The notes beneath the pieces are model-generated. The model saw only the letters and a list, made by a program, of their open reading frames with translations. It ran no database searches and was not told the DNA's origin. The position numbers were made by a program, and so were the translations under genes. Of a stretch of DNA of 64,000 nt, positions 270-3,200 are shown in pieces (position 1 is the stretch's first letter; every line of letters starts with the position of its first letter). Where the stretch lies: contig JAWQFM010000008.1 of the NCBI GenBank assembly GCA_033442325.1, positions 1,121,037-1,185,036 of the forward strand, read 5' to 3'. Source of the stretch: Salpingoeca rosetta. Its lineage: Eukaryota; Protista; Choanoflagellata.

Positions 270-3200
270 GCTGGGGAAGCGACGGGCGAGCACATCCAAG
301 ATGGGCGGTTTGTTGTTCCTGCGCCAATCCCTCAATTCGGCGGCAGACACTTCATCCTCCGCAACCCAGTGGCAAAACCCGCACACGGACACGTGTTGTG
401 CACACTCCTTGCAGAACTCTGCCTCCTGTGTTGCAGAAGCATTTTAGAGAACAGAGGAGGTGTGGTGAACAGTAGCACAAGTGACATGAGCCATGCGAGA
501 CGGGCAAAGACGAACACAGAGACACGCAGGCACATAACCACACACGCACACACACGCGCGCGCGCTCATACAAGTGAAAACACACACAGCACAGCTCGTA
601 CCGGGTCGTTGTACGCAGAGTAGACTGGCGGGCGCTTCAGGTGGCAGTCGCGACAGCGCCACTTCTCCCCAGGCGGTGGACGTTTGGTCCCGTCCTCCAT
701 GCACCCATCAGGGTGACACACAACCATGTACTCGGCCTTGCCCGTCTGCGAATTCGTGCGGGTGGTTATCACCTCCTGCAGTCGTGGTCGTTGTTGGTCG
801 CAGCAGCAGCGGCAGGGGCAGTGACAGCGTTGTGGAAATGTGACATGTGGGGGATGAGCACAGGCCAGATGGCCAATTGTTGGGAAGGGAGGGGCAACGT
901 GTCGAGGGAAGGCGGGCGTGTATGCGTGCGTTGACGTGCAACTGTGTGTGGGTTGTATTCGCATGCACAATCGCACAATCAGACAATCACACACAAACAG
1001 AAACACACACACACACACACACACGTACCTTGATGCGGCGTTTGCGGTTCTCTTGCTCGAGCGGGTTGTCTGGATCGGAGGTGGTGCCGCCAAGCGGATA
1101 CAGAACAAACGTCGACACGCGCACGCTGTTCGCGGGATCTGATGCAAGGTGGTCAATAGTGGATCATGATGGTGGTGGTGATGACGATCAGGTGTAAGGT
1201 TAATGGAGGTGAAGACCACCACTTGCTTGGTTGGTGGACACACACAAACCACAAGCGCGCGCACGCACACACACACACACACACATTGACAGACAGACAG
1301 ACACACACACTGAAGCACACACACTGAAGAACACACACACACACACACACACACACACACACACTGAAGCACACGTGCTCGCCCGTACCTGTGCGGTTGA
1401 GGCCGTTGCAGTGGTGCATGGTGTATGCAACGGGCTGTGCACCCACGGGCTGGCTCGCCTGCTCCTGCTGGTATGTCGCCATAGACGCTGCCATGGCCTG
1501 TCGCATTGCCTCGTCATCGTCGCTCGCGTTGTCATACAGCGGGTGCACGTTCCAGTCATCACCATCTCGCCCAAAGTCAAAGTTGGGGGGAAGCGCGAGC
1601 GGTCCGGAATTGCTCCCGTTGTCGCTGTCGGTAAACGCGTTTGTGCCGTTGTCGCTGTCGGTGAAAGTGTTCGTGCTGCTGTTGTTTGCAGCAGCTGTCG
1701 TGCTGGCGTCGTTGATACTGCCGTGGCTATCGTTGTGGCTGCTGCTGCTGTTGTTGATGTGTTCGTTGACGTTCTGGGCGGTGTTGTCGAACGTGAACGC
1801 GTTGGGTGGCGCACCTTGCGACATCATCCTGGCCAAGCCGGTGGCTGCAGCTGCTCCTGTTGTCAATGTTGCGGCGGCGGCGGTGGTGGCGCAGCCTGGG
1901 TTGGTGGTGACGACGGGGTTGTGCCTGCCGTCAGTGGACGAAGAGGAGGGGCTCGACACACCGGGACTGTCTTGCAGTGAGGCCGCCAGCGCCAGCTCCA
2001 GTGCTTGCTGCTCATCCATGGTCGGCTGCGTGTTTGTTTGTGTGTGTATGTGTGTGTGTGTGTGTGTGTGTGTGTGTGTGTGTGTGTGTGGTTGTGTGCG
2101 AGTGAGCCAGTCGGGGAGAGAAGGGGAGCGAGTGAGTGAGTGTGCGGATTTGAATCAGGATGCGGCTCACGCAGGTGCAGACAAGCTCGACTGCAGGAAC
2201 ACATGCGCAATTGTGTCAAGGTGCACGTGGACGCGATTGTAGCTGTTTCGCACGTCTTGCAAGGAGAGGTTTGAAGTTTGAGTGGCGAGCGTCGGTGTTG
2301 CCGTGTCATAACCTGTGTCCAAGGAACGGAATGTGAGACATTGAGCGGAAAAGAACAAGAGACAATAGAGCGAGGCTGGGTGTGAGGGAGAGATTCACAG
2401 ACAATAGAAATCACCTCACACAACCCCGCAACATGTACTCATGCCTGCCACGATGCACACACACACACATACACATACACACACACAAAACGCACGCACA
2501 CACACACAAAACACAACAGCATCGCATGCACGAACCTCTGGGACAGTGGCGCTTCGTTTCGTCTCCATCGCTCGCAGGGTCTTGGTCGGACCGTCGCTCT
2601 GAACAACGGAAACAGCAAAATGCCGCGCGCGACAGCAGAGAATGATGGGAAAGCGAGACGCCCGGGGGGGGGGGAGATGGCAACGAGCAGCAGCATGTAT
2701 GGCATGACGTGACATGATGTGAAATGATGATGACACGATGCTTTGACGATCGTCATCCGCTATCTTGAACCCAGGCACAACACAAACAACAGATGACACA
2801 CACACACACGTACAAGAACACAATGCACACACACATGCACACACACAAGAACACACACACACACACACAAGAACACACTGCACACACACAAATACACATG
2901 CAGAAAATGTCCAACCAATGACACACAGGCTCACTTTCGGAGCGCTTCTGCAGATCAAGACTGCCGTGCTGGCGGTGGACAATGTCAGCTGCTCTCGGGG
3001 TCTGCAGGAGAGAGTGCAAGGGCAGCCTTCAACTCATCATCCTCTTCATCGTCATCATCGCCGTGATCATCGTCGTCATCATCATCAATAGCGTGTGCAC
3101 CGCCAGCAGTCCCAGTCACAGCATTGTGTCTGCGATCGTCCGCTGCCGCTGTTGCAGGAGCAACCGGAGTGGTGGCGACCGTGGCAGTGGTGGTGGCCTG

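Follow-up and report, generated by a model that had tools for sequence, protein, structure and literature searches.

Can the catalytic domain of a deubiquitinase host a chromodomain-like fold that itself hosts a zinc-binding element, and what would such an arrangement be good for? The question is raised by a stretch of 64,000 nucleotides from the choanoflagellate Salpingoeca rosetta (GenBank assembly GCA_033442325.1, contig JAWQFM010000008.1, positions 1,121,037 to 1,185,036; hereafter the window), whose minus strand encodes the greater part of a gene split into many short exons, the 3' end of which lies beyond the window start. An initial annotation, made from the nucleotide sequence alone, had proposed that this gene encodes a MINDY-type enzyme with a nested module, in which a zinc finger like those of RanBP2/NZF interrupts a chromo-like domain, as a possible ubiquitin- or methyl-reading architecture. 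In our analysis, the nesting of enzyme, predicted chromo-like fold and Cys-rich segment was supported, while the NZF identity was not, and a methyl-reading function appeared unlikely. We consider it probable that a chromo-like fold with an inserted zinc ribbon serves the MINDY-3/4 enzyme as a zinc-stabilized protein-binding platform.

Judging by its sequence, the host is a MINDY-3/4-type cysteine deubiquitinase of a choanoflagellate. The second exon in the window matches the Pfam family MINDY-3_4_CD (PF13898) with an E-value of 3.2e-16 and 59.7 bits (cut-off 27), and its orthologs do so with E-values of 1e-30 to 4e-34. In human MINDY3, the catalytic triad consists of C51, H287 and N386, with Q45 as the oxyanion residue (bioRxiv 10.1101/2025.07.16.665128). 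Gln, Cys and His are invariant and Asn is nearly invariant in our alignment of the family (A2), and the window features them in the motifs KQHANGPCG, GNHYT and HCNGL, so that the module had rightly been placed in a MINDY catalytic domain of the same family as the human enzyme. Since the HYNGL-type motif of human MINDY3 carries Asn386 (bioRxiv 10.1101/2025.07.16.665128), the motif MHHCNGL ahead of the module marks the Asn strand and not the catalytic His, which sits in exon 4. In assigning proteins to the MINDY-3/4 type, we treated the triad Asn as dispensable. In the published description, the catalytic domain of human MINDY3 takes up the entire protein apart from its EF-hand, and this description contains neither a chromo-like nor a zinc module, as the initial annotation had stated. 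The inserted EF-hand binds ubiquitin and the ubiquitin-like (UBL) domain of RAD23, and the enzyme was recently shown to depend on this insert; moreover, human MINDY3 reaches sites of DNA damage through RAD23.

The three exons that encode the module splice into one open frame with GT/AG borders, which contains the residues quoted in the initial annotation. They extend, on the minus strand, from 1138 to 1029 (acceptor cAG, donor GTACGT), from 775 to 602 (acceptor gcAG, donor GTACGA) and from 425 to 270 (acceptor acAG, donor GTACGT). Following an upstream exon that ends at 1389, the spliced frame reads DPANSV...RKRRIK / EVITTR...AYNDP / EAEFCKEC...LARRFPS, with the junctions at residues 212/213, 249/250 and 307/308 of the partial gene model. 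At the level of sequence, this model is independently supported by the comparison with P0067, a complete open reading frame (ORF) of 694 residues from the transcriptome of Microstomoeca roanoka. The spliced product aligns to residues 489-679 of P0067 with a single gap of one residue and remains colinear at each of the three junctions, and the module exons in the window are 64-73% identical to their M. roanoka counterparts, with every conserved residue retained. P0067 extends 15 residues past the C-terminal helix motif encoded at 270-305. A hint of transcription, suggestive only, comes from several probable RNA runs, which contain a fraction of 0.45-0.51 of the sampled words, near the estimated exonic share of ~0.48. 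Further upstream in the gene, a boundary at 2171 for the small exon starting at 2312 was rejected because it breaks the frame; a donor at 2253 restores it.

The module is a genuine insertion. In proteins that carry it, the NG[IL] motif is separated from the C-terminal helix by ~140 residues, compared to ~27 residues after the Asn strand in canonical MINDY3-type proteins (e.g. P0007, 433 residues), and an extra segment of ~110 residues is therefore real. It comes after the strand next to the triad Asn and precedes the final helix of the catalytic fold. When 1.84 billion representative proteins were searched with exon 2, 65 MINDY-type relatives were obtained, the closest of which come from the transcriptomes of M. 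roanoka, Barroeca monosierra, Salpingoeca infusionum, S. helianthica and Stephanoeca diplocostata. The module is found in five choanoflagellate species besides S. rosetta (P0067, P0002, P0004, P0037 and P0043) and in five environmental sequences. Two of the latter, the ENA metagenome scaffold P0005 and the Logan run-assembly contig P0050, each contain it in one uninterrupted ORF, and the remaining three (L003 at 1456-1749, L004 at 211-462 and L005 at 411-620) are eukaryotic contigs from a scan of JGI metagenomes, which was conducted with the alignment of the zinc part (A4), as the alignment of the whole module (A1) was too divergent. In L003, UIMs, the HYNGL strand and the module occur together. 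Going by these sequences, the module is conserved across both major choanoflagellate groups; the arrangement is common to choanoflagellates and not unique to the S. rosetta genome.

Its conserved features include a helix motif E-E-x-N-x-x-R-[KR]-I-[KR] (A1) and the motifs E-Y-L-V-V-C, D-G-S-M-E, W-R-C-R-D-C, P-P-V-W-x-A-[FY]-N, C-x-x-C, C-G-[FYW]-C-H-W and A-E-L-x-x-W. Within D-G-S-M-E, the residues D, G, M and E are invariant (A1, A3), whereas the third position is Ser in all seven relatives and Cys (codon 703-701) in S. rosetta; this Cys is therefore not a metal ligand.

For the fold of the module, we obtained two AlphaFold2 models. The first (m77b5ac652287) covers residues 555-668 of P0067, is based on a 10-row alignment and has a predicted local distance difference test score (pLDDT) of 80.5 and a predicted template modeling score (pTM) of 0.73; it consists, in this order, of a helix, two strands, an irregular Cys-rich part, another strand and a helix. 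In the second, a separate model of full-length P0067, the module reaches a pLDDT of 82-96. Both were compared to 48,161 representative chains of the PDB by exhaustive, Foldseek-independent structure alignment. For the module model, only 60 of these chains scored at Z>=2, and the top ~38 were nearly all chromo or chromoshadow domains, for example Chp1 (3g7l; Z 5.3, 53 of 55 residues) and dHP1 (6mha; Z 5.4, 2.0 Å, 52 of 53 residues). For the full-length model, the top 25 matches were all chromodomains, with Z-scores of up to 6.8 (Chp1, 53 of 55 residues, 2.3 Å), followed further down by papain-like deubiquitinases, namely the yeast MINDY protein YGL082W (Z 4.9), Josephin, PLpro and CYLD. Given that whole target domains are covered, that the match list is homogeneous and that the background falls to Z 2, the chromo-like fold is well supported for a prediction. 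The proposal that the flanks of the Cys-rich segment resemble the two halves of a chromodomain is thus borne out by the three-stranded sheet and the C-terminal helix in both models and by the chromodomains that top the PDB searches. We are confident in describing the module as a predicted chromodomain-type fold, composed of an N-terminal helix, a β1-β2 hairpin, β3 and a C-terminal helix, in which the β2-β3 loop appears expanded by ~55 residues.

The relation to known chromodomains can be described more closely. Classical chromodomains (HP1, Polycomb/CBX, CDYL and Chp1) and chromoshadow domains superpose as 53-55-residue domains at 2.0-2.5 Å with Z-scores of 5.3-6.8, and the module echoes their sequences in the patterns [VI]-x-x-[VI]-[LI]-D-x-R ... 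E-Y-L-V and W-x-x-E-x-x-L ... E-L-x-x-[WF]. By contrast, the additional N-terminal helix, the ~55-residue candidate zinc segment in the β2-β3 loop and the embedding in the catalytic domain of an enzyme set the module apart. An insert in the corresponding loop is present in CHD1, but we know of no chromodomain that carries a zinc ribbon inside, and of none that is found inside a deubiquitinase. The ZMET2/CMT chromomethylases, eEF3/New1, GEN1 and cpSRP43, which are also among the matches (4fsx, 8ylr chain v, 6s47 chain Bi, 6grb, 5e4w and 3ui2), demonstrate that chromo folds may reside within catalytic domains and have DNA, ribosomes or unmodified peptides as ligands, although none of them is a deubiquitinase. 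Foldseek, queried with the module model, listed chromodomains and some zf-RanBP fingers; with the full-length model as query, MINDY3/4 structures were missing from its list, apparently because the PDB copy searched does not contain them. A shape search in the ESM Atlas returned the P1-head of SecDF (template modeling score 0.4, root mean square deviation (rmsd) 4.8), one Chromo cluster and CUL7/9; we regard the likeness to SecDF as spurious. A search of the same atlas by features yielded no usable match. Searches of Pfam and of PDB sequences with single exons gave either nothing or chance matches (designed trefoils, CEA, RasGAP SH3).

The ~55-residue segment in the expanded loop is predicted with good confidence to form a four-Cys element with two knuckles and no following helix, and we read it as a C4 zinc ribbon of unassigned family. 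The pattern W-x-C-x2-C...N-x6-C-x2-C noted in the initial annotation is present as WRCRDC-x11-N-x6-CKEC, and the four Cys are invariant in all relatives that cover these columns. Its assignment to the RanBP2/NZF fingers, however, is poorly supported. These fingers follow the consensus W-x-C-x(2-4)-C-x3-N-x6-C-x2-C, with 3 residues between the second Cys and the Asn, compared to 11 here; the spacer between the knuckles has 18 residues instead of 10, Pfam zf-RanBP remains unmatched at E<=10, the Thr-Phe pair is absent, and the Foldseek matches to zf-RanBP have E-values of 1.8-3 at an rmsd of 7-10 Å. The likeness lies in the four Cys in two knuckles and the lack of a helix after the second knuckle, and Nup153 and RanBP2 appear in the Foldseek list. 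Pfam searches with the zinc part yielded sub-threshold matches to generic zinc-ribbon models only, and its best, non-significant sequence match is the GATA finger of AreA (E 0.07). With GATA fingers it shares a spacer of 17-18 residues and a P-x-W motif, but these fingers are treble clefs with a helix emanating from the second Cys pair, which is not seen in the module model, and no Pfam GATA match was obtained. Instead, short strands are modeled at either knuckle, and that no helix follows the second one favors a ribbon over a GATA-type treble clef. In the environmental contig L003, an intron cuts the ribbon after CRDCHLQ; in S. rosetta, the exon border falls elsewhere, after NDP.

A second conserved set of Cys, Cys and His residues (VVC ... 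CGFCH), which had escaped the initial annotation, is located at the base of the insertion. In the CGFCH motif, 10 of the 11 sequences of alignment A5 retain the first Cys and the His, and 8 of 11 retain the second Cys, which is Ala in L003 and Leu in L004. In L005, the Cys/Cys/His set before β3 is replaced together (by Ala, Ser and Ile), while the four ribbon Cys are kept. This loss as a block, with the ribbon Cys staying in place, fits a second, separate metal site, which would clamp the ribbon to the barrel at both its entry and its exit. Candidate ligands of this site are the Cys at the end of β2, the Cys three residues before β3 and the His with which β3 starts, with either the adjacent Cys or the Asp of DGSME as a possible fourth.

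The module is not the only insertion in this enzyme. Three UIM-like motifs, encoded on the minus strand at about 3008-3040, 1975-2016 and 1480-1520, lie downstream of the catalytic His and ahead of the Asn strand and fill the slot occupied by the EF-hand in human MINDY3. Both enzymes would accordingly share an accessory ubiquitin-binding element at this position, predicted and UIM-like in the choanoflagellate. The Pfam UIM match in exon 1389..2025 is sub-threshold (E 0.041). Relatives carry two to six UIMs in the same slot, and P0050 has an A20 zinc finger in their place. One MINDY scaffold thus appears with different cassettes: animals have an EF-hand, choanoflagellates have UIMs, and one environmental relative has an A20 finger. 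Two M. roanoka isoforms, P0001 (485 residues) and P0066 (391 residues), depart from the 694-residue form right after ...AVDKKTE, a point that corresponds to an exon border in the window (...QKRSE | KRRSD, donor at 2934); probably, both result from intron retention and are devoid of the Asn strand and the module.

What, then, might the module do? Its most likely function would be that of a zinc-stabilized protein-binding platform fixed to the catalytic domain. Such a platform might cooperate with the UIM array in the slot of the human EF-hand and could hold a further ubiquitin of the chain, a UBL adaptor or the substrate. The more specific version, in which the module would be a novel type of domain for binding ubiquitin or UBLs and the first chromo-fold ubiquitin reader, we regard as rather unlikely. 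If it were true, the module would represent a new fold among ubiquitin readers and a tractable case of accessory domains tuning a K48-specific deubiquitinase, as S. rosetta can be edited by CRISPR. If the module binds something else, it would still constitute an undescribed domain family and extend the short list of chromodomains that are embedded in catalytic domains.

Several points weigh against a ribbon-bearing chromo-like platform. The Z-scores of the structure search are modest (5-7), albeit explicable by a 53-residue domain that is interrupted by a 55-residue insert; Foldseek matches in the PDB have E-values of ~1, with none at E<=0.001 for either model; and the alignments underlying the models are shallow (10 and 20 rows). 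Pfam Chromo (PF00385) is not matched by any of eight module sequences at E<=10, and profile searches of PDB sequences returned no chromodomain. The class of the ribbon fold was taken from the model of the whole module, and the metal geometry, the partition of the ligands and the way in which the module sits with respect to the active site are tentative. NZF domains such as those of Npl4 and TAB2 have a Thr-Phe...hydrophobic signature for ubiquitin. The Thr-Phe contact motif is missing here, with Y/H/N-L/A after the second Cys and S/Q/N/T-A-F/Y/I before the Asn (A4). Likewise, the support for the splice junctions is comparative, being derived from the M. roanoka ORF, and the protein of S. rosetta was not found by a word search with the UIM exon, by the search of representative proteins, in which the top match was 54% identical, or with an orthologous module as query. 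Finally, exon 4 of the S. rosetta gene carries a 1-nt frame break.

This break becomes apparent as an in-frame TGA at 2987-2985 of the minus strand, before which there is no GT donor. Past a run of four C at 3000-2997, the frame that is colinear with P0067 is shifted by 1 base and open (...RAADIVHRQ...KRSE / KRRSD...). It looks like a homopolymer error of the assembly or a real frameshift at 3000-2997, and it may account for the absence of a full-length S. rosetta protein from the collections. A 38-nt intron with a GC donor, considered as a way round the TGA, was rejected as implausible.

Among the alternatives to a binding platform, the one that fares best, though it is somewhat less likely than a dedicated ubiquitin reader, sees in the module a structural or regulatory elaboration of the C-terminal lobe without a ligand of its own, for instance a lid, a dimerization element or an autoinhibitory plug. 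The pLDDT of the module, ~80 alone and 82-96 together with the catalytic domain, suggests that it packs on the core, and chromoshadow domains, which dimerize, score as well as chromodomains. The surface-type motifs DGSME and PPVW and the eight candidate metal ligands are strongly conserved over deep lineages of choanoflagellates, which we weighed against this reading, but such conservation is compatible with a structural role, too, and is not decisive.

A slightly weaker case can be made for the binding of nucleic acids, similar to that by the GEN1 chromodomain or by zinc ribbons of proteins in transcription and translation. Among the structural matches of the models, the GEN1 chromodomain ranks first or close to first (Z 5.6 and 6.3), a conserved basic stretch R-[KR]-I-[KR] is found beside β1, and the best sequence matches of the zinc part, mentioned above, were to the DNA-binding GATA finger and to generic zinc-ribbon models. 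All of these similarities are below significance, however, and the host is an enzyme from a family that cleaves polyubiquitin and has UIMs. Furthermore, the basic stretch is preceded by a conserved acidic run and is itself modeled as helix and strand of the fold. On balance, we find this function improbable.

More improbable still is a reader of histones or methyl-lysine that targets the deubiquitinase to chromatin, even though the top structural matches are the histone-binding chromodomains of HP1, Chp1, Polycomb, CDYL and CBX, with identities in the superpositions of up to 23-30%, and although human MINDY3 is recruited to DNA damage, albeit via RAD23. The aromatic cage of Drosophila HP1, which consists of Y24, W45 and Y48, falls on an invariant Arg, on the invariant Cys at the end of β2 and on the invariant Asp of DGSME (A1, A3), in a register set by hand from the superpositions against the HP1 sequence and not from a printed structural alignment. 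With these residues at the cage positions, methyl-lysine reading, which the initial annotation had considered, is unlikely. The failure to match Pfam Chromo points in the same direction, and the zinc insertion occupies the usual place of the cage-forming loop.

That the module is an artifact of mis-joined exons, of a pseudogene or of an over-interpreted AlphaFold prediction from a shallow alignment, as the TGA without a preceding GT donor and the absence of the S. rosetta protein from the searched collections might suggest, is highly improbable, given the uninterrupted ORFs of the same architecture in five other choanoflagellate transcriptomes and two environmental contigs, the location of the frame break in a four-C run of a low-complexity linker far from the module, the agreement of two differently built models on the fold and the 64-73% identity of the exons to the M. 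roanoka module.

Literature searches on MINDY3 in combination with chromodomains or zinc fingers found no description of the module, and no Pfam family covers it, so the domain arrangement appears to be undescribed. Alongside the cassettes in the His-Asn slot, choanoflagellates would thereby offer a second elaboration of the MINDY scaffold, in which enzyme, chromo-like fold and predicted zinc ribbon are nested at three levels. The features of the gene are compiled in the following table.

Table. Parts of the predicted S. rosetta deubiquitinase gene, from 5' to 3' (window coordinates); strands and helices refer to structure predictions.
Feature	Position	Strand	Content and basis
Exon 1	5221..5374	-	Start codon and oxyanion Gln (codon 5233-5231, in KQHANG); Gln invariant in A2
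Exon 2	4294..4793	-	N-lobe with catalytic Cys in GPCG (codon 4788-4786); Pfam PF13898
Exon 3	3983..4106	-	Ends ...YPVWVAH; GT/AG borders, open frame, colinear with P0067
Exon 4	2935..3592	-	Catalytic His in GNHYT (codon 3584-3582), poly-Q/Ala/Thr-rich linker, first UIM-like motif
Small linker exon	2536..2598	-	Aligns with ...EKRKSD...EDTKRHCAS of P0067
Small linker exon	2254..2312	-	Donor GTGCGA; no other boundary leaves the frame to the next exon open
UIM/Asn exon	1389..2025	-	Two UIM-like motifs and Asn strand MHHCNGL (Asn codon 1407-1405, equivalent to human N386)
Exon A, first part	1068..1138	-	Last core β-strand of the MINDY fold and short linker; strand 539-545 in the full-length P0067 model
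Exon A, end	1029..1067	-	Acidic-basic N-terminal helix of the module; helix 4-10 (module model), 558-564 (full-length model)
β1-β2 hairpin, chromo-like	716..775	-	Ends in conserved Cys (codon 718-716); strands 14-22 and 29-35 (model)
D-G-S/C-M-E loop and Pro-rich stretch	662..715	-	Lowest pLDDT of the module model
First predicted zinc knuckle, WRCRDC	602..661	-	Cys codons 655-653 and 646-644, followed by extended hairpin to ...AYNDP; both Cys invariant (A4)
Second predicted zinc knuckle, EAEF-CKEC	402..425	-	Cys codons 413-411 and 404-402; both Cys invariant in 11/11 (A5)
Candidate second-site ligands	369..401	-	Cys 383-381, Cys 374-372 and His 371-369; directly before chromo-like β3
Chromo-like β3 (WVAE) and C-terminal helix	306..368	-	Strand 92-95 and helix 101-111 of the module model
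Return to MINDY core, C-terminal helix	270..305	-	Helix 668-676 of the full-length model

Two further observations concern the surroundings of these exons. The introns between positions 1 and 5400 of the window are nearly all filled with (GT)n/(CA)n microsatellites, and one of them with (CT)n; a microsatellite stretch of this kind lies at 2817-2859. Upstream of the deubiquitinase gene, at 7420-7500 of the minus strand, a neighboring ORF ends with paired CxxC motifs (...KCTACNEHGLMKCPACVYG... stop).

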